Source: Paramoeba atlantica (taxonomy: Eukaryota; Protista; Discosea). From it: a DNA stretch of 64,000 nucleotides. The stretch is taken from assembly GCA_977017575.1 (NCBI GenBank), contig CDRNVI010000062.1, positions 1-64,000 on the forward strand, in the 5' to 3' direction. The notes beneath the pieces are model-generated. The model saw nothing but the letters and a program-made list of their open reading frames with translations. It had not been told where the DNA came from and made no database searches. Of the stretch, positions 739-53,880 are shown in pieces (the stretch's first letter is position 1; every line of letters starts with the position of its first letter). The translations under genes were made by a program, and so were the position numbers.

Positions 739-2485
739 TTAAAGTCCTTATGCCTTCTGCTTTGCATGAAAATGTTGCGTAGATTATCTGGTTCAGCACC
801 TTGCAATCCTTCAACAGGTGCCTGTATATCAAGAGATATTTTTGTGATTGGTTTCGGAATTTCCTTTCCCGAAGATCGAAGGCAAGAGGCAAGAAGATCC
901 CAGGAAGGAAGATCTTCTGTATGCAGTTGCGCTGCGACCTGTTCACAAATTCTGTTGTTAAACTTCTCTGCATGTTCTGGGTTTGATAATTGAAACCAGT
1001 GTATTTTCGATCTTTTGATGTTGGACGATATCTTCCATTTGATTCGAATCTCTGCTCGCACAAGAAAGTGTACTGTCGGCGTAGGAGCGGCAAAAACTTG
1101 ATGATGTCGCAGAGCTGATGCAAAACGTGGGTACACTGCAATGTGATCCAACTGGCGTTTAGCATCATTAGGCAATATGCATGTCCATACTCGCTTGCTA
1201 GGGCATAAGGAGTGTCCTGATTTGCAATCTATCCCTTCCAAAAGCCCCTTCAACCTTTCAACAACAAGTTCGTCTTCTTCTGTCGTTTTGCCGAAAGTGA
1301 GAGGTGCATTTAAGTCCCCAAGTAGAAGTGCGGGTCTTCGAGGGGCTTTGCCTACTGCTTCGTGAAACGCGTTTGTCAAAGAAATATCAAACTCTTGTTT
1401 GGCCTCCTCTGGGGAGTCACGCGTCGGCCCATATGCGTTGAGCATAAAGGCTGACCCTCCTTCGATGTTGAACTCGCCGGCAATTATCCTATCATTTACT
1501 TTCCACGCCTTTATTGGCTCTTGCGTGATGAACCCCATACCGTTATACCCTTTCACTGCAGACATAAGGTAGATGAAAAAGATTTTATTCCCGTGTCGAA
1601 GCTTGCGCTTTAAAATATCAAATCCTTCGCCAGAAGTAAAAGTAAACCTTGTCTCCTGGAGAGCCAGTATATGCAAGTTGGTTTGTGCCATGTATCGCAC
1701 AATCTCGTGCAATCGAGCAGAAGCTTTCAGTTTGAAAACGTCGTCACCTTCAAGTTTCAATGATGTCGTATTAAGAGTGCCTACAGCCAGATACTTCTTC
1801 ACAAAATCCAAAAAATCCAAATCATTCCGGATTGCTCCGGATGGTCACTGGCAAGCCAGACCCTTCACAGACAGATTTGGAAGTTCCGAGGCCGACGTCC
1901 TCTACCAGTTTCCGCTTGTCCAAGGCGGCACCAACGTGCTGTTGCCAACACGCTGCGTCGACGAACTGTACGTCAACACGGGTCACCCAAGAGGTGTAAG
2001 CCGGGTAAGGGAGCTGGTTCCCTGAGGGGAGGGTCCGGGACGGTCCTCCGAGTACCGGGCCTAGTCGGTTATCAGCCCAGCCTCTTAGAGTGAGGCCGCC
2101 GGGAATGTTGCGATGAGTGGGTTTGAACTCGCCGTCTGAGCACCATGTGCTTCAAACTTTGAGTTCTTGCCACTCCGCCACCTCCACAGCAGCCACCTCC
2201 ACTCCGCCACACTCCACACTTCTTCACAGCAGACCCTTTCGGGTCGTCGTCGCGTAGGGCATGCTTGCCACACAGTACCCTAGTTTTCCGTGCTTTTCTA
2301 CGGTTGTTCGAACGCCCAGGTTTTCGAATGCGTGCTCCGCATAACACGATTCGCGAATCATACGGCGGAAAGGGAAGCGTTTCCGATCGCTGGTGGTACT
2401 TTACCCGCCAGCGACCTAGCTGAAAGAGGAAACCAGGCCCTCGTTGAGTTACAGTGCCCTTCCAAATCCGAAACTCCGCAAATAT
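739..2485 (-). pseudogene. Fragment of RTE-like LINE family C (N-terminal domain end + APE endonuclease), split by a SINE
   Basis: ORF 645-1820 has APE motifs (LNTTSL, ALQETR, YGPT, GDLNA, LDH); near-identical by eye to 13574-14885. Confidence 0.9.
1804..2217 (-). mobile_element. tRNA-headed SINE family B, copy 1
   Basis: 11-bp TSD ACTTCTTCACA (1793-1803, 2218-2228); the empty site is intact at ~14625-14640. Minus strand has an A-box-like TGGCGGAGTGG and a B-box-like GAGTTCAAACCC; ends in hairpin TCCGGA-GCAA-TCCGGA + TTTGGATT tail. Confidence 0.8.
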
Positions 2486-10430: not shown

Positions 10431-13400
10431 CACTCACTCACTCGCTCACTTTACACTAAGCCCCGGAATAGGGCGTTAGTTAAATATCTATCTGTATTTA
10501 CGTTCAATACATTCATCATCTAACTCTCCAACTGATTTCGTTTTCACGTCGATTGCCTCGTACTCGGTGCGCTTCGAAAGCGAAACACACAGCACCTTGC
10601 GTACACTGGATTTTATTGTCCCATCTTGGTTTCCGTCAAAGGGGATATTTTTCCGCGTTATGAGGTCGCGTCTCGTGGTCTACCTTTCTTGGTGCGGTTC
10701 GCGGCGGTACTTAATTGTGATCAAGGCGCGGGGCAATGCTGTGATAAGTGCCGTTCTAGTGTAGTAGCCGAGGTCTTGCGCCTTTTCTCTGAGAGAGCGC
10801 CGAAAAGAGCTGTCTTTTCCAACGTGTCACACTTATCGTTGCATGGGTTGCCGCAATGCCCCTTTACTTTAATCACGTAGAATTTGACGCCATTCTCCTC
10901 TAAGGTCTTTATTGCACCACCTAAATCCCAATAAATGGAAGGCCATTGTATCCTATTAGGTAATACGTTCGCCGCGTATTGCGTATAAAATGCCATGCTA
11001 CCCACGAATCCGTATGCAGTACGATTGTACCCTCAACTTTGGGTGCTCTCTGAATAGCTAGTAGTGCCGCATAAAATTCCGCTCTTTCTGGCGATGGTGT
11101 GCCAATAATCTCCTTACAAACAGTAGAACTAGCCACTTCATGGCCACACTGAACTTCAACAATCCCAATTCCAATCTTTCCGATGTAACCAGAACTAACT
11201 GAGGCGTCGGTATAAAGGTGTAGAACGTTGTTGTCACTTGAGAAAGGTGTTGGACCTTCTTCAGCGTACTGCAGGGCTGAAAGATCATTTTCCCGCTGTG
11301 CAGCAGCTGCAATGCGGTGCCAACCGCTTGATCTATAACCAATATACATTTTAGGATTCTCTAGCCCCATTTGAAGTTTTTCAACTTGTTTTTGCCAACA
11401 TTTTCTATCCTCCGCATATACCAGGGCTTCCTCGACTACTAATTCCATATCCCCGGTGCAAGCTTCGGATGGAGAACGAATTCGACGCTGCATCAGAACG
11501 AACGCGCCGCTGCATCAGTTCCGAATATATCTCTGAATTCCGTATTAAGTGTCCTACAAGACGAGCCCAGTTAACTTTGTGCAGTGTGGAAAAAAGTGGG
11601 TGTCTATATATAAGGCGGATATTGGCACACTTTTCCCAGAATGATCCAGTTTCGGACACTTACAAATAATACAACGCATCTTATTTACCCGTATATCTAC
11701 CCATTTCAATGTGGTTTCGCTCAACACTAATGTGTCCGAGTTGTAATTTAGGATAGTGTATACGAGGGCATCGAAAAAACGAAGTTTTGTCTTGACGCTC
11801 AAGGGCGATACCCATATCGGGGGATAGCGGCGGAGGTGGCGGAGGTGGCGGAGTGGCAAGAATTCAAAGTTTGAAGCACATGGTGCTCAGACGGCGAGTT
11901 TAAACCCGCTCATCGCAATATTCCCGGCGGCCTCACTCTAAGAGGCTGGGCTGAGAACCGAATAGGCCCAGTACTCGGAGGACCGTCCCGGACCCTCCTC
12001 TCAGGGAACCAGCTCCCTTACCCGGCTTACACCTCTTGGGTGAGCCGTGTTGACGTACAGTTCGTCGACGCAGCGTGTTGGCAACAGCACGTTGGTGCCG
12101 CCTTGGACAAGCGGAAACTGGTAGAGGATGTCGGCCTCGGAACTTCCAAATCTGTCTGTGAAGGGTCTGGCTCGCCAGTGACCATCCGGAGTTCTTTATC
12201 TCCGGAGCAATCCGGAAAATCCGATACCCATATGCCCCGAAATTTTGAGAAACCTGCCCACGTAAGTCGCAACCTGTCCCTGATACATGCCAATGGTTCA
12301 GTTTCATGGAAAAGATTTCCCAGATACCTATAGGAAAGTACTTTGAGCACCGTCCCCAAAGGATCAGATATCATTTCATCGGGGCCTCGTTGCCTTCCTA
12401 GTTGCATCCACGCTGTTTTAGCAGGGCCTACTGCTATTCTTAGGTTCGCGGAGAGGGCTTGTTCCGCTGTATCCTCAATCATACTCTGTAGATCAGCCTT
12501 GTTATCTGAAAAGAAAAGAAGATCATCAGCATAATTTAGATCCGTAAGACGTGTTTCCCTCAGGCCTCTGCTCTTGGATGATAGAAGGATGCCATGGGAT
12601 TTTGAATCAATAGCTTTGCTTAATATACGATCCAGAACCATTACGAAGAGGTAGGGAGCGAGGACATCCCCTTGAAGAATGCCGGTTGTAATGGGGAATG
12701 TTTCTGTTAAACCATATGATGTTCGCACGACCCCTCGCATATTCCGACATACTGACATAATCATTTCTCGCAATTTCGGTCCAATGTGAAACGCCACTAG
12801 GGATGCATGAATGGCACTAAATAAAACGGATGGAAAAGCTTTCGAAAAATCTAGAAAACCAATGCACATCCCGTTTCCTCTTAATGCTTTTACTCGTGCT
12901 TCGTTGAGAATCGCCTGGGCTTGCATTGTCGAACGGTCAGGTCTGAACCCACATTGATTATGGCGAAGCACAGGCTCTACATACGGACGAATTCGTTGTA
13001 ATATTAAACAGTTCATAAGTTTAACAACACAATTTACTAAGCATATGGGCCTTCAATTCTTTAAAAGAGTCAAGTCACCTTTCTTCGGTATCGGAACTTG
13101 TAGGACGTCACCCCAAACTTCCGGAGCCAATCCCGTGTCGTAAACGCGGTTGATAATGCTGAGCAACCACTTTCTAAGATAATCATTATCAACGATGCAC
13201 GCAAAAGCCTCCATGGGGATTTCATCCTTTCCCGGTGCCTTACCCCTCCCAAAGTGTGAAATTCCGCTTCGAAGCTCTTCCTCAGTGAAAGGGGCGTCCT
13301 CAAGTGTGTTTGTTGGAAGATTCGCCTCTAAGAATCTTATATTGTCGTCGCCCCCTGTGTCTCCAGCAAAAGCTTCAAAAAACGTTTTTATCTCCGCCAG

Positions 13401-15112
13401 CTTCTGTCTGTTTGAGGCCCCCGGTATGTTGAAGTCTGCTCGATCAACTCCACATATTTCTTTTACTGCTCTCCATGGGCTGGCGTGATTTTTCTTCATC
13501 TTAGATTCTAGGACTTCACAAGACCTAGTTATAGCATCCTCGATTGCTCCCCTGTTGTGTGATACTAGTTCATTAAAGTCCTTACGCCTTCTGCTTTGCA
13601 TGAAAATGTTGCGTAGATTATCTGGTTCAGCACCTTGCAATCCTTCAACAGGTGCCTGTATATCAAGAGATATTTTTGTGATTGGTTTCGGAATTTCCTT
13701 TCCCGAAGATCGAAGGCAAGAGGCAAGAAGATCCCAGGAAGGAAGATCTTCTGTATGCAGTTGCGCTGCGACCTGTTCACAAATTCTGTTGTTAAACTTC
13801 TCTGCATGTTCTGGGTTTGATAATTGAAACCAGTGTATTTTCGATCTTTTGATGTTGGACGATATCTTCCATTTGATTCGAATCTCTGCTCGCACAAGAA
13901 AGTGTACTGTCGGCGTAGGAGCGGCAAAAACTTGATGATGTCGCAGAGCTGATGCAAAGCGTGAGCACACTGCAATGTGATCCAACTGGCGTTTAGCATC
14001 ATTAGGCAATATGCATGTCCATACTCGCTTGCTAGGGCATAAGGAGTGTCCTGATTTGCAATCTATCCCTTCCAAAATCCCCTTCAACCTTTCAACAACA
14101 AGTTCGTCTTCTTCTGTCGTTTTGCCGAAAGTGAGAGGTGCATTTAAGTCCCCAAGTAGAAGTGCGGGTCTTCGAGGGGCTTTGCCTACTGCTTCGTGAA
14201 ACGCGTTTGTCAAAGAAATATCAAACTCTTGTTTGGCCTCCTCTGGGGAGTCACGCGTCGGCCCATATGCGTTGAGCATAAAGGCTGACCCTCCTTCGAT
14301 GTTGAACTCGCCGGCAATTATCCTATCATTTACTTTCCACGCCTTTATTGGCTCTTGCGTGATGAACCCCATACCGTTATACCCTTTCACTGCAGACATA
14401 AGGTAGATGAAAAAGATTTTATTCCCGTGTCGAAGCTTGCGCTTTAAAATATCAAATCCTTCGCCAGAAGTAAAAGTAAACCTTGTCTCCTGGAGAGCCA
14501 GTATATGCAAGTTGGTTTGTGCCATGTATCGCACAATCTCGTGCAATCGAGCAGAAGCTTTCAGTTTGAAAACGTCGTCACCTTCAAGTTTCAATGATGT
14601 CGTATTAAGAGTGCCTACAGCCAGATACTTCTTCACAGCAGACCCTTTCGGGTCGTCGTCGCGTAGGGCATGCTTGCCACACAGTACCCTAGTTTTCCGT
14701 GCTTTTCTACGGTTGTTCGAACGCCCAGGTTTTCGAATGCGTGCTCCGCATAACACGATTCGCGAATCATACGGCGGAAAGGGAAGCGTTTCCGATCGCT
14801 GGGGTACTTTACCCGCCAGCGACCTAGCTGAAAGAGGAAACCAGGCCCTCGTTGAGTTACAGTGCCCTTCCAAATCCGAAACTCCGCACTGCTCGCGTAT
14901 CTCCAGGAGAGTGCGATTTGTAACCTGGGCGAATAATTTTACTAATGCTCATCACTGCAAGGGAGCGAAGTTTAGCATGCCCGTCTGACCCCAACATCGG
15001 GTCAAACAGAGCACCCCGACCTAACGTGGACCTAAACAGAAGGTTAATAATTCCTAGCTGTGCAGGCCCGGGCGCCTCCGCCATATTTTTGAAAATGTTC
15101 AAAAAAACAAAG
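10431..15112 (-). mobile_element. Near full-length RTE-like LINE family C with RNase H; frameshifted, contains a SINE
   Basis: ORFs 14857-15102, 13053-14873 (APE), 12027-13016 (RT: LDFSKAF, GILQGD, YADD), 10921-11493 and 10721-11005 (RNase H: YTDAS, RAE, TDS, VKGH). Candidate 8-bp TSD GTTTAGTT (10423-10430, 15113-15120). Confidence 0.88.
11818..12221 (+). mobile_element. tRNA-headed SINE family B, copy 2
   Basis: 12-bp TSD CGATACCCATAT (11806-11817, 12222-12233); removing it restores the RT-thumb reading GIWVS|PLSVKTKLR. Confidence 0.85.
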
Positions 15113-15135
15113 GTTTAGTTAAACCCGTTGTTTTG

Positions 15136-15960
15136 AGCTAATTAACGGTATGATTTTAAATCGTATTCGGCCCTCGACCGAGCGAATTCTACGCGAAAAT
15201 CAATATGGTTTCCGCCCGGAGAGGTCCACCTGTGGAGCCCAAATTATTCTCAACGAAATCCTCACGAAATCAAGACGGAACCGAAGTCATGAAAATGTCA
15301 TGATTGCTTTCATCGACTTCGCGAGTGCCTTTCCATCGCTTTCACACTCATCTATCAGGGCAGCGTTACATTCGTTCCACGTAGGACATCGAATGACAAC
15401 CCTTGCAATGTCGGCCTACGAGGGTTTAGAGGATGGGTTTAGATTGTACGTACCCCGTTTGGGAAAACCAGCTCCTTTCCTATTACCTCGGGTATTTTGC
15501 AAGGGGATGCACTGGCTCCGTATTTATTTATCATGGTTCTCGATCGCATCCTTCACGCGGCATTGAAACATAAAGATGATGGACTAACGCTGAGCTCCAC
15601 CGGAACCAGAAAACGTGGATATAAATCAATACGAGTGACTGATATTGATTGCGCTGATGATTCGATCCTGTTTTCCGACTCCAAACGTTCATTAGAAAGG
15701 ATGGTTGACAGCGTCGCTGCTGAAGCATCCAAAGCTAATTTGAGTATAGCCGCTGGTGTCAACAAAACGGCATGGAACAAAACAGCATGGCCAATATGGC
15801 TTGTCAACGTTATCCTCAAGCTAATTAACGGTATGATTTTAAATCGTATTCGGCCCTCGACCGAGCGAGTTCTACGCGAAAATCAATATGGTTTCCCCGC
15901 CCGGAGAGGTCCACCTGAGGAGCCCAAATTATTCTCAACGAAATCCTTAAGAAATCATCG
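15136..15960 (+). pseudogene. RT fragment of an RTE-like LINE with internal duplication
   Basis: NRIRP..ENQYGFRP, FIDFASAF, QGDALAPYLF, CADD; the first ~130 bp are repeated at ~15820. Confidence 0.85.
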
Positions 15961-15961
15961 C

Positions 15962-16182
15962 AAAAAAAAAAATCCGAATCATTCCGGATTGCTCCGGATG
16001 GTCACTGGCAAGCCAGGCCCTTCACAGACAGATTTGGAAGTTCCGAAGCCGACGTCCTCTACCAGTTTCCGCTTTTCCAAGGCGGCACCAACATGCTGTT
16101 GCCAACACGCTGCGTCGACGAACTGTACGTCAACACGGCTCACCCAAGAGGTGTAAGCCGGGTAGGGGGGCTGGTTCCCTGA
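15962..16182 (-). mobile_element. SINE family B, 5'-truncated copy
   Basis: Matches 1810-2025. Confidence 0.8.
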
Positions 16183-16225
16183 TGCATACTAAGCGGCACT
16201 TGATAATGCATATAGCACATTGATT

Positions 16226-16505
16226 GCGAGGAGATGGCGCTGGTGAGGGGCATGGGGTTCCACCCTCCGGCCTTCTCCACGTACAGGGTCCCGGGCCCAG
16301 AAACCTTGACCTTCCTCAACAAGGTGGCCCGGGCCCACTCATCGGACAAGAATGGGTTTCTCGCCCATCTCTTAATGGCCATCGGGGTGGCCATCCAGAG
16401 AGGGAATGCCCAGATTGCGCAGGCGGCGGTACAGGACTGGTACCGCCGCGGGGTTCTGGGGTAGGACCAGGGAGGGGGGGTAGGCTTCCGGTGGGCCTAG
16501 GGGGG
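16226..16505 (+). mobile_element. 3' fragment of a CRE-clade (restriction-like endonuclease) retrotransposon
   Basis: PGPETL.FLN.VAR...AIGVAIQRGNAQI C-terminus, homologous to ORF 45850-46680. Confidence 0.75.
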
Positions 16506-16519
16506 TTAACATATCCTAC

Positions 16520-16670
16520 TTAAAATACGTTTTAGGAGTCGATTTTGGAAAAATAATATTTTTACTTGTTTTTGGGTCAAAGAAAAAAATTTTTGGTCAA
16601 CCCAAAAATTTCAGAAAATTTGACCTTGTCGGACCCTTCCTGCGCGTACCAAGGGGGGGATGGAAAATTA
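16520..16670. repeat. Dispersed repeat family C, associated with AT-rich minisatellites
   Basis: TTTAGGAGTCGATTTTGGAAAAAT...TTGACCTTGTCGGACCC recurs at ~25850-25960, ~28850-28990 (reverse) and partly ~18895-18930. Confidence 0.7.
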
Positions 16671-16698
16671 TCGACGCGATATACAGTGAAGTATTACA

Positions 16699-17538
16699 CG
16701 AAAGAGCCTAAAAAACAAAAATTGGCTTCGAAAACAGGAGAAACCGGAAGGATTGGAGCCAAAAAAAGCCGATTTTCAGGTAAAAATGGGGTCAATTTTA
16801 GCTATTTTCGCTCTCAGAGCACTAAATCAGACATTTGCGCTTGGGAAATTACTCTTAGGCATGAATGAAAGCCTACCGAACGTATTGGGTGGAGAATACG
16901 ACTCCAACCATACCATTCTTTCGACACTAAAATGACCCTTGGGGTCCGAAAAATACTTTTTCACCTTTTTTAGTCAAAAATGGGTCATTTGGAGGGGCGC
17001 ACCACGGTTCGAAGAAGGGATACCTTGCGAAAACAACTGCGGAGAAAGCTAGTGTAGGTCCCAAACTATCAAAATGCAATAGGGGAAACGATTTTGGAAA
17101 AATATTTTTTTTGCCATTTTTTTAGCTAAGTTGAAATGTTTTTCAAAAATGTTTTCCGAACTTGGCGGACCCGTCCTGCGGATACGCGAGGGGGTCACCA
17201 CCGGGTAGGGGGATATAAAATGCGCGCCAAGACCCCGGCTATCCCTTCTGCGGTTTTTTTTCGAAAACTAATTTTCTCGAAAAAATTTGCTCGACCATGA
17301 CCTCCCTAATTTTCCCCCCCTGGACCCCCCTAATTTTTTCGAAAAAATTTGCTCCACCATGACCTCCCACTGGACCCCCCATTTTTATCATTTTTTTTTT
17401 TAAATTTTGGACCACCGGAGCCCCCTTTTATATTTTTTTCCTTTATTATATTACTGTGTTCCTCTTTATATTTTCACTGTTCTTGTTCACTTTTTTTTCA
17501 ATAATCGAGGGTAGAGCGGTAGTTATACAACCACCGCA
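16699..17538. mobile_element. Family A copy; palindrome mostly lost at left, short-hairpin end at right
   Basis: Body homology; ends GCGGTAGTTATACAACCACCGCA. Confidence 0.8.
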
Positions 17539-17553
17539 GTACGAGTGGATTAT

Positions 17554-18128
17554 ATTGCGGTGGTTGTATAACTACCGCTCTACCCTCGATTATTGAAAAA
17601 AAAGTGAACAAAAACGGTGAAAATATAAAGAGGAACACAGTAATATAATAGAAGAAAAATTTATAGAAGGGGCTCCGGTGGTCAAAAAATTTTCCGGGGG
17701 GGGGTCCATGGGGGGGAGCATACCGCACGAAACTTTTTTGAAAAAATTATTTTTCGAAAAAAATCCGCAGAAAGGGTAGCCGGGGTCTTGGCGCGCATTT
17801 TCCACCCCCCAACCCGGGAGTGACCACCCCTCGCATGCGCAGGACGGGTCCGCCAAGTTTGGATTTTTTCGGATTTTTTTTTTGAAAAAAAATTCAAATT
17901 GGCGAAAAAAATGGCAAAAAAAATATTTTTTCAAAATCCTTTTCCCTATTGTGTTTTTATAGTTTGGGCCCTATACTAGCTTTCTACACCGTTGTTTTCG
18001 CAAGATATCCATTCTTCGAGCCGTGATACGCCCCTCAAAATGATACATTTTTGACTAAAAAAGGTGAAAAAGTATTTTTCATACCCCAAGGGGATTTTTT
18101 GTGTCGAAAGAATGGTTTTTGTGTCGAA
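17554..18128. mobile_element. Family A copy in opposite orientation, truncated before the palindrome
   Basis: Begins ATTGCGGTGGTTGTATAACTACCGC; mirrors the preceding copy. Confidence 0.8.
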
Positions 18129-18444
18129 AGATGACCTTGGTGAAAGTTCCATTTTGGCTTCTTGGGATGCCACTGGTATTCGAAGAGAAATGTGGGGGTA
18201 TGAGCCATGGAGACGTCCATTGATCGACGATATCAAACAGAAAGCACAGTCTGGAAATCTTTTGGAAACCGTTGAAATTTCTGAAGACCCTCCAAGCGAT
18301 AGTGACATTGAGGATATCTCCGATCAGCGTGATTCAAGACGAACAAGTCTTCCTTCCGGATCTTTCCCAATTCCATGGCGAAACTTTCCTCTCCTGCTTG
18401 TGAAGAACATCGGAAGGCCCCGAAAAACAGTTCCTGTGGAAGAA

Positions 18445-19227
18445 ATCCAGGCTAAACTGGTCGAGGGAGATACTAAAGGCACCTTTGGAAAACCACCTCG
18501 AAACTAGAACGGTATCACCCGTTAAAGACCCTTTTGCCACATCAGAATGCTCTACAAACCGGGGGATACCGTTCCAGTTTCGAGGTGATTTCCCAAAGTG
18601 CCTTTAGCATCTCCCTCGCCCACTTTAACCCGGATTACATAGCCATCCGAACATGCTCCCTATGGCGCTTTATAGCTTCCAACGCGAGGAAGTCGTCGTC
18701 GCTGCGGTAAAAAGACAGAAAGGCTACGCCTTCTGCCTTTTTGCCTTGCGCCTCCTCCTTCCTCTACGGCCTCGCGTGTCACACACTTCCGAGTAAAGTT
18801 TGGCCTTTGTAGGTATATTACCGGAACGTTGTGGAGAAATATCGAATGAAACCAAAGCGTATACACGTATATCAGGCCTCAAACTCTCAAAAAACGGTCT
18901 AGGAGTTGATTTGGGAAAAATATATTTTTTGACTTTCACCCACAAGTTTTCAGTTTAATTTTTCAAAATTTCAAAAATTGCTATGATCACCCTGGTGGGG
19001 AGGTGGGGGGGGGCAGGGGATACCCATCGGAATTGTTGAAAAACTAGTGATCTCGTCACTCAATTCGATTCATACGTCTTTGTAATTTTTTTTTTCAAAA
19101 ACTGACCTGAAACGATATCGGGCACGATATCGGGCCACAAATCGGGCACGAAATGGGGCACGAAATCGGGCAAGAACGGGCACGGCGAATTAACCTACGG
19201 TAGCGAGGGAGTAGTATCTCCATCAAT
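18445..19227. mobile_element. Non-autonomous family B, copy 1 (190-bp palindrome at left, short hairpin + CAAT at right)
   Basis: Arms ATCCAGGCTAAA..GAGGGAGATACTAAAGGCACCTTTGGAAAACCACCTCGAAAC and its reverse complement, ~33-nt spacer; right end GAGGGAGTAGTATCTCCATCAAT. Confidence 0.75.
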
Positions 19228-19309
19228 ATAAATATAATCCAGGCTAAAATCGGGCACGGCGAATCAACCTACGGTAGCGAGGGAGTAGTATCTCCCTCAA
19301 TATAAATAT

Positions 19310-19687
19310 AATCCAGGCTAAAGTGGACGAGGGAGATACTAAAGGCACCTTTGGAAAACCACCTCGAAACTGGAACGGTATCACCCGTTAAAGACCCTTT
19401 TGCCACATCAGAATGCTCTACAAACCGGGAGATACCGTTCCAGTTTCGAGGTGGTTTTCCAAAGGTGCCTTTAGTATCTCCCTTGCCCACTTTAGCCTGG
19501 ATTACATAGCCATCCGAACATGCTCCCTATGGCGGAATTGTTGAAAAACTAGTGATCTCGTCACTCAATTCGATTCATATGTCTTTGTAAATATTTTTTT
19601 CGAAAACTCACCTGAAACGAAATCGGGCCACAAATCGGGCACGACGAATTAAATCTACGGTAGCGAGGGAGTAGTATCTCCCCCAAT
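19310..19687. mobile_element. Family B, internally deleted copy 2, tandem with copy 1
   Basis: Same palindrome (19310-19503) and same right end GAGGGAGTAGTATCTCCCCCAAT. Confidence 0.75.
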
Positions 19688-19726
19688 AACTTTTTACCCG
19701 CCCAAGTCATTTTATAAATGTTGGTA

Positions 19727-20424
19727 TTTTCTTTTTTAGGCTCTTCGTTAAACGCGGTGGTTGTTTTCAACTTAGAAGTCACTCATGCTGCGCGCTTCGC
19801 GTTGAAAACTACCGCCGCGTTTAACGAAGAGCCTAAAAAAGAAAATTTAGCCTGGCAAACGGAAAGATTATAGCCAAAAATAGCCGAAATTCGGGTAAAA
19901 ATGGGGTGATTTTCGCGTAGTTTTGCTGTCAGAGCACTAAATCCGACATTTGCGCGTGGGAAATCACTCGTAGGCATGAATGGAAGCCTACCGAACGTAT
20001 TGAGTAGAGAATGCGACTCCAACCATACCATTCTTTCGACACTAAAATGACCCTTGGGGTCCGAAAAATACTTTTTCACCTTTTTAGTCAAAAATGGGTC
20101 ATTTTGAGGGGCGCACCACGGTTAGAAGAAGGGATACCTTGCGAAAGCAACTGCGGAGAAAGCTAGTGTAGGTCTCAAACTATCAAAATACAATAGGGGA
20201 AACGATTTTAGAAAAATATTTTTTTTGTCATTTTTTTAGCTAAGTTGAATTTTTTTTCAAATTTTTTTTTCCGAAAAAATCCGAACTTGGCGGACCCGTC
20301 CTGCGGATACGCGGGGGGGTCACCCCCGGGTAGGGGGGTGGAAAATGCGCGCCAAGACCCCGGCTACCCTTTCTGCGGCTTGTTTTCGAAAGCTAATGTT
20401 TTCGAAAAAAATTGCTCGACCATG
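19727..20424. mobile_element. Family A copy (palindrome at left) joined directly to RepHel coding sequence
   Basis: Palindrome ~19727-19845; the body runs into the Rep-encoding frame at ~20421. Confidence 0.8.
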
Positions 20425-22899: not shown

Positions 22900-24090
22900 C
22901 GCGAGCGGAAATGAATGTTTCTGCTCGGTGGCCCCGGAACCGGGAAAAGTCTAGCTTCCCGTTTTATAATGCAAGAACTGGGAAGCCAATGTATTACAAT
23001 GGCGCCCACTGGGATCGCCGCATCAGTACTGCACTGTTTCACAATACACGCTTCCCTCTGCATACCGATAGGGGCTACTGCAAGAAATTTGAAACATCTT
23101 TCAAGCAGTAGGCTTCTAAAGGTATGAGAAATGTCGATTAATCATAGTCGACGAAGTGTCAATGATCAGCAAGTGTTTCCTTGCTTGTATCAACACTAGA
23201 TTGCAGCAAATCAAAGGCAATGAGCAGCTCCCCTATGGAGGCATCAACATGCTCTTTTTGGGAGATTTTTATCAGCTGCGACCAGTACAAGGAGCATCTC
23301 TTACCATAGAAGATAGTCCTCCTGGTAATAATCCCATTTTTGGGAATATTTTTCAAGTCTCGCATGTGTTTGAACTCAAACAGCAAATGCGAGCACGACA
23401 AGATACTGTATTTTCAGATATCTTGCGTCTTGTTCGAAAAACTCCGAATGAGGGGTTGAAGTTCATCCAATTGGTAAAACCTCTGACCTCTGAGGACCAA
23501 GAAAAGTTCCGCAATGCAATTGTCATTGTTGGAACAAATATTGAACGACACAAGATTAATGTCGCAATGGCAAGAATTTTTGCCAGACGTCACAATTGCC
23601 CATTGTTTGCATGGACAGGCGATAACGTCCAAGGTAAACTCATTGACACACACCCTGAAGCATTTTCTGTATTTGTAAAAGGAGCACCCGTTGTAATCAC
23701 GGAGAACATTGCTCCTTATACATTGAAAATTGCGAATGGGACCGTGATTGAAATGAAAGATCTTGTGTCAGACGATTTGTCATACGACACTATTGATGGT
23801 GTTCGTTATCTAAGAAAAGCCCCTTCTTTTATGCAATGCATTGAGAAGGGGTCAGGAGTAGGGTTTTACGCCAAAAAGGCGCAGCACCATGACAAGACAA
23901 CCCAAAGAAACTTTTAAGTGGAATTGGGATTTGCCTATACGTATCACAAAGTACAAGGTATCACCGTGAAGAAAGGTGTTATTCTTGACTTGAATGATAG
24001 GACGTGGTTGAGGACTCGCCAAGCTCACAGTAGCAATATCCAGGGCACAATGCTTCGGTGATATTCGAGTGCTCCCTGGCATGGGCACAG
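22900..24090 (+). pseudogene. PIF1-family SF1B helicase of the Helitron-like element, disrupted
   Basis: GGPGTGKS, MAPTGIAA, DEVSM, GDFYQLRPV, ELKQQMR, GAPVVITENI, ELGFAYTYHKVQG, and KLTVAISRA in shifted frames. Confidence 0.92.
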
Positions 24091-28228: not shown

Positions 28229-28632
28229 TATTGAGGCCACGATTTGTGGCCCGATTTCATGCCCGATATCGCGCCCGATATCGTTTCAGGTGAGTTTTCT
28301 AAAAAAAAGTTTACAAAGACGTATGAATCGAATTGAGTGACAAGATCACTAGTTTTTCAACAATTCCGATGGGTACCCCCTGCCCCCCCTCCCCACCAGG
28401 GTGATCATAGCAATTTCTGAAATCAGAGGAAGGAGGAGGCGCAAGGCACAAAGGCAGAAGGCGTAGCCTTCTGTCCTTTTGCCGCGGCGACGACGACTTC
28501 CTCGCGTGGGAAGCTGTAAGAGGTCCTAGGGAGCATCTTTCGATGGCTCTGTAACCCAGGCTAAAGTGGACGAGGGAGATACTAAAGGCGCCTTTGGCAA
28601 ACTACCACAAAACTGGAACGATATCTCCCGGT
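28229..28632. mobile_element. Family B copy in reverse orientation, half palindrome
   Basis: Reverse complement of parts of 18560-19190; left end retains ATTGAGG (reverse of CCTCAAT). Confidence 0.7.
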
Positions 28633-28989
28633 TTATATATATTTTATATATAAAAAGGGGGCTCCGGTATATTTATAAAAGGGGGCTCCGGTGGTCCAAA
28701 ATTTTAAAAAAAATTGAAAAAAATGGGGGTCCATCGGGGGGGGGGGCACAAGTCGCTTTTTGAAAATCTTGATTTTCGAAATCGAGCGCAGGGAAGTGGT
28801 AGAGTAGGCCGCGGCGATGACGTTCCACGACCACCACCTGTGTGTACCCCCCCCCCCTGGTACGCGCTGGAGGGGTCCGACAAGGTCAAAAATTCCGAAT
28901 TTTTTGGGATGACCAAAAAAATTTTTTTTGGACCCGGAAAAAAGTAAAAATTTTATTTTTCCAAAATCGACTCCTAAAACGTGTTTTAG

Positions 28990-53724: not shown

Positions 53725-53880
53725 AATATTCTTTTCCCGTTAAATATTCTTTTGTCACATCAGAATGCTTTACAAAACGGGAGACACCGTTCCAGTTTTG
53801 TGGTAGTTTGCCAAAGGGGCCTTTAGTATCTCCCTCGTCGACTTTAGCTTGGGTTACATAGCCATCGACTTGAAGCGCAC
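53725..53880. mobile_element. Family B palindrome, partial
   Basis: Spacer and right arm followed by TTACATAGCCATC, as in the other copies. Confidence 0.7.

Follow-up and report, generated by a model that had tools for sequence, protein, structure and literature searches.

In a 64-kb stretch of DNA from Paramoeba atlantica (contig CDRNVI010000062.1, positions 1 to 64,000; hereafter the window), a short non-coding repeat, which we call family B, ends on one side in a very large palindrome and on the other side in a small hairpin. What kind of mobile element has such ends, and which enzyme might move it? A sequence-only reading of the locus had described B as unrelated to a second repeat family of the window, family A, and had proposed that the two use one and the same terminal code for a shared class of Rep proteins. 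Our results indicate, with a probability of roughly 80%, that family B is a non-autonomous rolling-circle transposon of the Helitron2 type (HLE2). Its end grammar is the published Helitron2/HLE2 design and not a new cis code (PMC3627910, PMC4067079, PMC11417382). What is new is a giant 3' palindrome with four repeated sites, 10–20 times the size of the hairpins described before, which is common to several families of this genome.

Structure, copy number and boundaries of family B

Positions 18444-19687 of the window consist of two head-to-tail copies of family B and a 74-bp duplicated junction. All coordinates given without a contig or locus name are positions in the window, and the transposon orientation of B corresponds to the minus strand of the window. 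The 5' end of copy 2, for instance, is at 19687 and its 3' end at 19310. The features of this region are:

18444-19227, minus strand: B copy 1, 784 bp
18444-18636, minus strand: 3' terminal palindrome of copy 1, decayed, arms 85-90% complementary
19204-19227, minus strand: 5' terminus of copy 1, with one stem mismatch
19112-19184, no strand: subterminal tandem repeat of 12 bp, consensus ACGAAATCGGGC, 6.2 units next to the hairpin end of copy 1
19177-19322, no strand: tandem duplication of 74 bp, 2.0 copies, 97% match
19310-19687, minus strand: B copy 2, 378 bp, a minimal non-autonomous element whose boundaries match those of other copies
19310-19503, minus strand: 3' terminal palindrome of copy 2, 194 bp, arms 19310-19387 and 19426-19503, 38-nt spacer
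19664-19687, minus strand: 5' terminus of copy 2, ATT + G + stem-loop, with one stem mismatch
19726-19846, no strand: family-A palindrome, outside B, 38 nt from the 5' end of copy 2
17636-17656, no strand: empty copy of a site that B has used repeatedly (..AGTAATAT-AAT-AGAAG..), in the 5' region of an A-type element

A body segment of ~360 bp (18668-19027) is present in copy 1 and missing from copy 2, and the two copies are set apart by an 8-nt spacer, ATAAATAT. The 74-bp duplication spans the final ~50 nt of a B 5' region, then the 8-nt spacer, and 13 nt from the start of the palindrome that belongs to the following copy. A shorter version of the 12-bp tandem repeat occurs in copy 2 at ~19617-19644. 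Scans of the window with Rfam and for tRNAs gave no matches. Two more partial B copies, which belong to a diverged subfamily, are found in the window at 28242-28634 (minus strand) and 53736-53866.

Read in transposon orientation, B starts with (A)TT-G and a 13-nt repeat that forms a 7-bp stem with the bases downstream of it, followed by the body, the palindrome and the end ..CCTGGATT. The number of terminal Ts varies, as some copies terminate in GGTTT or GGTT. The 13-nt repeat begins 3 nt inside the 5' end, or 1 nt inside it in the case of T^T insertion, and its complement lies in the distal palindrome arm, ~19-20 nt from the 3' end. As had been pointed out before, TAGTATCTCCCTC in the hairpin end and GAGGGAGATACTA in the palindrome arm are exact reverse complements of each other; this relation holds in every B copy checked, and also in related families.

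The small hairpin has a 7-bp stem and a 6-nt loop. The end GAGGGAG-TAGTAT-CTCCCTC-AAT, given earlier as the hairpin end of the family, is indeed present, but in perfect form only at 19280-19301, within the 74-bp duplication; the copies that end at 19227 and 19687 have one mismatch each in the stem. We regard the small hairpin as real because it is conserved in 143 genomic copies versus none in a reversed-pattern control. In one B copy (L002) the loop has lost 3 nt while the stem is kept.

We searched the genome as a 45.7-Mb eukaryotic assembly of 248 contigs. The 29-nt hairpin end of B gave 143 matches and a 33-nt probe from the palindrome arm gave 222 matches (~111 palindromes), with zero matches for the reversed-pattern control of either probe. 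Family B has roughly 110-140 copies in this genome, which range in length from 0.38 to 1.46 kb.

In the ~30 loci that were fetched, similarity between copies breaks off precisely at AATCC.. and, at the opposite end, at ..CAAT, with more than 15 different flanks beyond these boundaries. At one of these loci (L002, on C2), B is inserted in another repeat, of which three paralogues without B occur on C12, C65 and C19. These empty sites read ..tagtttatagt-ATT-tcaaaaaa.., and the filled site reads ..tatagt-ATT-[element]-ATT-tcaaaaaa... The boundaries of B are fixed to within the 3-nt ambiguity of the ATT. In line with the sequence-only reading, the motifs mark mobile boundaries, as seen at the junctions of the ~30 loci with their many flanks and three empty sites. 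Boundaries unrelated to the motifs and a palindrome internal to a larger element were both looked for among these loci, and neither was found; the palindrome is terminal.

Kinship with family D and with published Helitrons

Which end of B is 5' and which is 3' can be read from a larger, coding family in the same genome, family D. C99 contains an intact open reading frame (ORF) of 2130 aa at 13191-19580 on the minus strand, which encodes a Rep-helicase (RepHel) of the lineage that we call lineage II. It is followed by a perfect 207-bp palindrome with 79-nt arms, the 3' end of family D. The 5' end of D lies 3.5 kb upstream of the ORF, at C99:23134, and consists of ATT-G, a 12-nt repeat and a 6-bp hairpin. 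On C99, C86, C102 and C40, a D 5' end and a D palindrome enclose a lineage II Rep in constant order and orientation, and genome-wide there are 53 D 5' ends and ~65 D palindromes. This layout fixes the polarity, with the hairpin end 5' and the palindrome 3' of the RepHel gene.

The termini of B and D are homologous. At the 5' end the first 14 nt are identical and the match is ~78% over the first ~45 nt, with one 5-nt indel. Homology at the 3' end covers the last ~35 nt, and the 12-nt repeat core and the terminal CTGG-TT are common to both families. B is thus not unrelated to every other family. D also resembles B in its four-site palindrome layout and its ATT target. Unlike B, it has a coding body of unrelated sequence, an element length of 9.5-12.5 kb and a 5' hairpin formed from the repeat's other half (stem AGATAC/GTATCT). 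The 5' stems of D and of a D variant (L028) differ from the stem of B, yet they are intact.

Two further families have the same structural plan and the same leading (A)TTG as B and D. Family B', a third non-coding family of ~0.4-0.5 kb, combines the 5' end of B with a palindrome of its own. A B-like 5' end at C99:29130 had been considered as the beginning of the lineage II element, but was rejected when a genome search assigned it to family B'. Family A starts with (A)TT-G, its own repeat and a 9-bp hairpin, a 5' end that was confirmed at ~35 different flanks. The earlier claim that the bodies of A and B lack similarity holds at the level of BLAST, apart from one 63-nt patch of 75% identity (18874-18936 vs 20170-20232). 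The motif AGGCT had been singled out near the outer end of both palindromes. It is present in A and B, but absent from the closest relatives of B, families D and B'. We therefore rejected it as a common signal, and it is probably not a signal at all.

D shows several side features. About ten D-type palindromes are spaced at ~1995 bp in C21:764730-782370 with no D 5' ends between them, which forms a tandem array of the 3' part of D. Between the RepHel stop and the palindrome of the D copy on C99, an array with a 112-bp period and 25-nt G+C-rich inverted repeats spans C99:10923-12739 (L062:3923-5739); this array is shorter in the C86 copy. C34:26315-26438 holds a D 5' end that is preceded, at a distance of ~60 nt, by a solo B 5' end of equal orientation; this may be an element with two 5' ends.

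The junctions of B and D also inform on the target. At the 5' junctions, the base that precedes TTG is A in ~90% of cases and G otherwise, and the 5' flank is T-rich. D has ATT at its 5' junction and GTT at its 3' junction, which argues against the triplet being a duplication. In one case, where the 3' junction of a D copy falls within a known repeat, the host A of ATT has been replaced by the G of D, which indicates that the A of ATT is host sequence. Because ATT is redundant at both junctions of B, the nucleotides of CAAT can be assigned only in part to element or host. Hence, the statement that both families end in a hairpin and CAAT is right about the hairpin, which A and B both have, whereas CAAT is partly target sequence. 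A single ATT in the empty sites versus an ATT at both filled junctions fits insertion at AT^T, although A^TT, ATT^ and a fixed 3-bp duplication give the same sequence. Possible insertion points would therefore be A^TT, AT^T and ATT^, of which AT^T agrees with the literature.

Several B insertions are close to the ends of other elements. B and B' copies of different subfamilies share one site (..CTTCTATT^ATATTAC..) in A-type 5' regions at at least five loci; the empty site at 17636-17656 of the window is another copy of it. At two loci, B 5' ends lie 0 and 38 nt from A palindromes (0 nt at L018/L019), and B copies are also found 8 or 37 nt behind one another. This suggests that B may prefer sites in or beside other Helitron ends. 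Public sequencing-run contigs of the same organism, which are short repeat contigs with a low share, yielded repeat noise, but neither a bridging contig nor an empty or circular junction that could be used.

The end design of B is well known from other Helitrons. In Helitron2 (Bao & Jurka 2013, PMC3627910), the 5' asymmetric terminal inverted repeat, which folds into a hairpin, lies 0-2 nt from the end, and its 3' counterpart lies 20-30 nt from the 3' end (PMC3627910). Like B, Helitron2 has a 5' hairpin made from an asymmetric repeat of 8-15 nt, 0-3 nt from the 5' end, a complement of this repeat ~20 nt from the 3' end and a 5' T start; B probably also matches it in TT insertion. In both systems, autonomous relatives carry DUF6570, Rep and PIF1 without an endonuclease, and non-autonomous derivatives outnumber the autonomous elements. 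The terminal repeats of HLE2 elements measure 12-16 nt and their insertion sites are T-T (PMC11417382). The terminal design of published Fusarium Helitrons matches that of B as well.

In Helentron and the non-coding HINE derivatives, the subterminal inverted repeats are 12-15 bp long, insertion is at TT, and tandem repeats occur in the interior of the element (PMC4067079). As in B, the subterminal repeats of Helentron, HINE and DINE-1 lie 2-4 nt from the 5' end and are combined with a 3' palindrome (Thomas et al. 2014, PMC4067079). The probable TT insertion, the variable number of terminal Ts, the short internal tandem repeats and the tendency to form arrays are further similarities. In contrast to B, the 3' palindromes of Helentron are only 5-10 bp and lie 8-35 nt from the end. 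Moreover, Helentron has an apurinic/apyrimidinic endonuclease domain, which the RepHels associated with B lack.

Helitron1 and Helraiser share with the system of B an HUH Rep with a Pif1-like helicase and, probably, the absence of a target duplication. In Helraiser, a 3' hairpin is reported to act as a termination signal (PMC4778049). However, Helitron1 starts with 5'-TC and ends with CTRR-3', has a hairpin of 16-20 nt ~11 nt from the 3' end and inserts at AT, and it has no terminal inverted repeats, no 5' hairpin and no DUF6570. With ends (A)TTG.. and ..CCTGGATT and an ATT target, B does not have the ends of Helitron1. Nor does it have those of terminal-inverted-repeat transposons or miniature inverted-repeat transposable elements (MITEs), as its two ends are not inverted copies of each other and it is flanked by a triplet that does not vary.

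The giant 3' palindrome

The palindrome end had been described as ~190 bp long with a spacer of ~33 nt. The length is close to what we found in the two window copies (193-194 bp), but the spacer is 38 nt. In copy 2, the arms of 78 nt each are 95% complementary. Folded as single-stranded DNA, the palindrome reaches -94.2 kcal/mol (z = -24.4), and none of 200 shuffled sequences folded as well. The B palindromes are pairwise 78-99.5% identical between copies, with a median of 90.5%.

The B palindrome contains the 9-mer core GGGAGATAC four times (one mismatch allowed), at an outer and an inner site in each arm. Shuffled palindromes contain ~0.04 such sites each. The core occurs at nearly the same four positions in the palindromes of B, of D and of a further Rep lineage, lineage III, with an outer-to-inner spacing of 46-48 nt, and the B' palindrome retains three of the four sites. 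The sequence between the core sites has diverged beyond alignment among these palindromes. The core was not found in the family-A palindrome, which has an 11-mer of its own, once per arm. In this respect the palindrome of B differs from Helitron2 ends, as it adds three further copies of the 9-nt core of the repeat at fixed spacing. Palindromes of ~120-250 bp terminate at least four families, which are served by three RepHel lineages. Helitron finders that expect repeats of 11-18 nt and a short stem-loop would mis-call such ends.

Pairing between the arms appears to be maintained. Across 27 B palindromes, 96% of cells pair. Changes on both sides were found in 10 arm pairs versus 2.4 in shuffles (0 of 500 shuffles reached 10) and 2-5 in slid controls, a count that relatedness among the copies can inflate when it is judged by shuffling. 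These data lend modest support to the idea that double changes preserve the pairing. No B copy without a palindrome was encountered among the ~30 loci examined.

Two variations of the palindrome were observed. Compared to the majority orientation ('flip'), the 38-nt spacer is inverted ('flop') in one B subfamily (L029:2775-2982) and in the palindrome associated with lineage III (C88:23338-23537). Some B copies are fold-back dimers, in which internal sequence that is normally one-sided is inverted on both sides of the palindrome (L007, C52:225577-225832; L016/L022, C40:736315-736553).

Rep-helicase lineages and the movement of family B

A genome search with the Pfam domain Helitron_like_N yielded 29 Rep-domain loci, which fall into four lineages. 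Lineage I, the most abundant RepHel of the genome, is ~90-99% identical internally and is associated with family-A palindromes; the broken RepHel copy at ~20.6 kb of the window belongs to it. Lineage II is ~95% identical internally and ~25% identical to lineage I, and lineage III matches lineage II at ~50% identity. A degenerate Rep fragment with 46-49% identity to lineage I represents lineage IV (L058/L059; C8:284093-284242; C52:288852-289001); it follows a B copy, ~0.9 kb past the B 3' end. Lineages I, II and III all combine DUF6570, a marker of the HLE2 (Helitron2/Helentron) clade (HELIANO, PMC11417382), with Helitron_like_N, and the PIF1 helicase was found in downstream pieces of lineages II and III. 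There was no match to the endonuclease domain Exo_endo_phos in the RepHel pieces of lineages I, II and III at E <= 0.001; matches nearby belong to long interspersed nuclear elements (LINEs). Around all 29 Rep-domain loci, B sequence occurs as chance neighbours only.

A clue to the origin of B comes from lineage III. On C88, a lineage III gene ends at 23223, and 115 bp after its stop codon lies a perfect B-type palindrome (23338-23537) that is 90-92% identical to one B subfamily. Moreover, the homology between the termini of B and D points to lineages II and III. From these sequence relationships we infer that the enzyme of B belongs to RepHel clade II/III and not to lineage I of family A. Hence, A and B would have the class of Rep in common, but not the enzyme. 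The proposal of a shared cis signal stands in so far as these end elements are served by Rep-helicases; they follow the known Helitron2 grammar, however, and the enzymes of A and B appear to differ. Whether B derives from a lineage III-type element is evenly balanced. Lineage II, the only lineage of clade II/III for which an intact ORF was found, may move B today, but this is less likely than not.

C12, which carries the only other lineage III copy, was rejected as independent proof of a lineage III 3' terminus. The two copies are collinear, and both are cut at the same upstream nucleotide by different LINEs. These LINE-like insertions abut lineage III at C88 ~15731 and C12 ~131415; one has an endonuclease ORF in opposite orientation, and the other has reverse transcriptase and RNase H in the same orientation. 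The 4 kb upstream contained no recognisable lineage III 5' end.

An alternative explanation might be that A and B are both mobilised by lineage I, the Rep of family A, which would then read the generic structure of the ends (large palindrome, short repeat, hairpin with CAAT) and not their sequence. Both families do start with (A)TTG and a hairpin and finish in a large palindrome, lineage I is the most abundant RepHel, and the B 5' ends at 0-38 nt from A palindromes bring the two together at two loci. Yet, the repeats are unrelated (GAGGGAGATAC in B versus GCGGTGGTTGT in A), the A palindrome lacks the B core, and the B termini are homologous to those of D, whose RepHel is only ~25% identical to lineage I. 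HLE2 families are known to retain their own subterminal repeats (PMC4067079), and a single Rep for A and B therefore seems very unlikely. Even less probable is a cut-and-paste, MITE-like or fold-back DNA transposon that duplicates a 3-bp ATT and resembles Helitron2 only superficially. B is indeed short and non-coding with a large inverted repeat, and ATT is present at both ends of filled sites and once in empty sites. However, a transposon of this kind would not be expected to have ends whose sole common repeat measures 13 nt and is placed asymmetrically (3 versus ~20 nt from the end), nor a triplet that is invariant across sites. The D junctions (ATT versus GTT) are equally at odds with it, and D encodes a RepHel and no DDE transposase.

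The palindrome itself could be an inherited by-product of hairpin-primed synthesis or repair, in which case only the short repeats and the terminal bases would be functional. The fold-back dimers and the spacer that is flipped between B subfamilies are what such a process might leave behind. This explanation nevertheless appears unlikely, since similarly large palindromes end at least four families of three RepHel lineages, the four core sites hold their position amid diverged intervening sequence, the arms stay paired through double changes, and no B copy without a palindrome was seen among the ~30 loci examined. Conversely, the palindrome might work as a hairpin origin and terminator of the parvovirus type, with its four phased cores as putative Rep-recognition sites and a 3' fold-back that primes or templates synthesis. 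This analogy would explain the flip and flop of the spacer, the fold-back dimers and the tandem head-to-tail pairs, but we consider it a long shot. If true, a rolling-hairpin step would have been grafted onto rolling-circle transposition, a mode of Helitron termination not seen in Helraiser.

Several observations weigh against B as a Helitron2-type element served by RepHel clade II/III, in addition to the possible inflation of the double-change count. In Helitron2/HLE2 elements, a stem-loop of ~5-10 bp follows the right repeat, whereas the repeat sits here inside a palindrome of 194-207 bp and the ~20 nt on its 3' side form no hairpin of their own. The 5' hairpin is thermodynamically weak (-6.7 kcal/mol at best, z = -1.85) and not significant by energy alone. 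The termini of B and D are only ~70-80% alike, below the >95% typical for an autonomous element and its derivatives (PMC4067079), and sequence does not reveal exactly which phosphodiester bond is cleaved. Both lineage III copies are dead, with TAA, TAG and TGA stops in frame. They remain collinear for at least 680 bp beyond the B-type palindrome, which is therefore not a proven terminus of lineage III, and the spacer of this palindrome is flipped compared to the nearest B subfamily. Finally, no B-terminated element with an intact RepHel was found, in a survey that did not extend to a complete genome-wide pairing of B ends.

Transposition of a non-autonomous Helitron2-type element with such ends might proceed as follows. 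A RepHel would act in trans to nick the 5' junction of B, after which the helicase would peel the strand off from 5' to 3'. The displaced strand would then snap into the very stable 3' hairpin, which may present the core GGGAGATAC as a duplex at four phased sites. The folded hairpin would mark the stop for Rep and the second cut. Insertion would take place at a host ATT in T^T style, with no duplication beyond the redundant triplet.

To our knowledge, the transposition chemistry has not been dissected for any HLE2 element. Knowledge of termination derives from Helraiser, which belongs to HLE1 and has a small hairpin. The genome studied here offers a natural comparison, with at least three RepHel lineages that are each tied to a sequence-specific short repeat and all have giant palindromes. 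The 9-mer core that B, B', D and lineage III share at conserved spacing leads to a testable binding-site model of which Rep reads which core and of whether the long hairpin serves as the stop signal.

A few observations concern the A-type elements and the surroundings of B. In the window, a 251-bp palindrome at 17422-17672 (120-nt arms, 11-nt spacer) consists of two head-to-head A-type 5' ends, an arrangement that recurs on C99. The stretch at 18122-18443, between the A-type body and B copy 1, is unique and looks coding; it is almost uncovered by the repeat-dominated public contigs of the same organism. Doubled A-type 5' ends, in which the second follows exactly 38 nt after the first behind ..CTCGATT, were found at L008:1376-1452, L019:11-87, L014 ~2251-2289 (minus strand) and L015 ~960. 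They may reflect either reuse of one ATT site or re-initiation.

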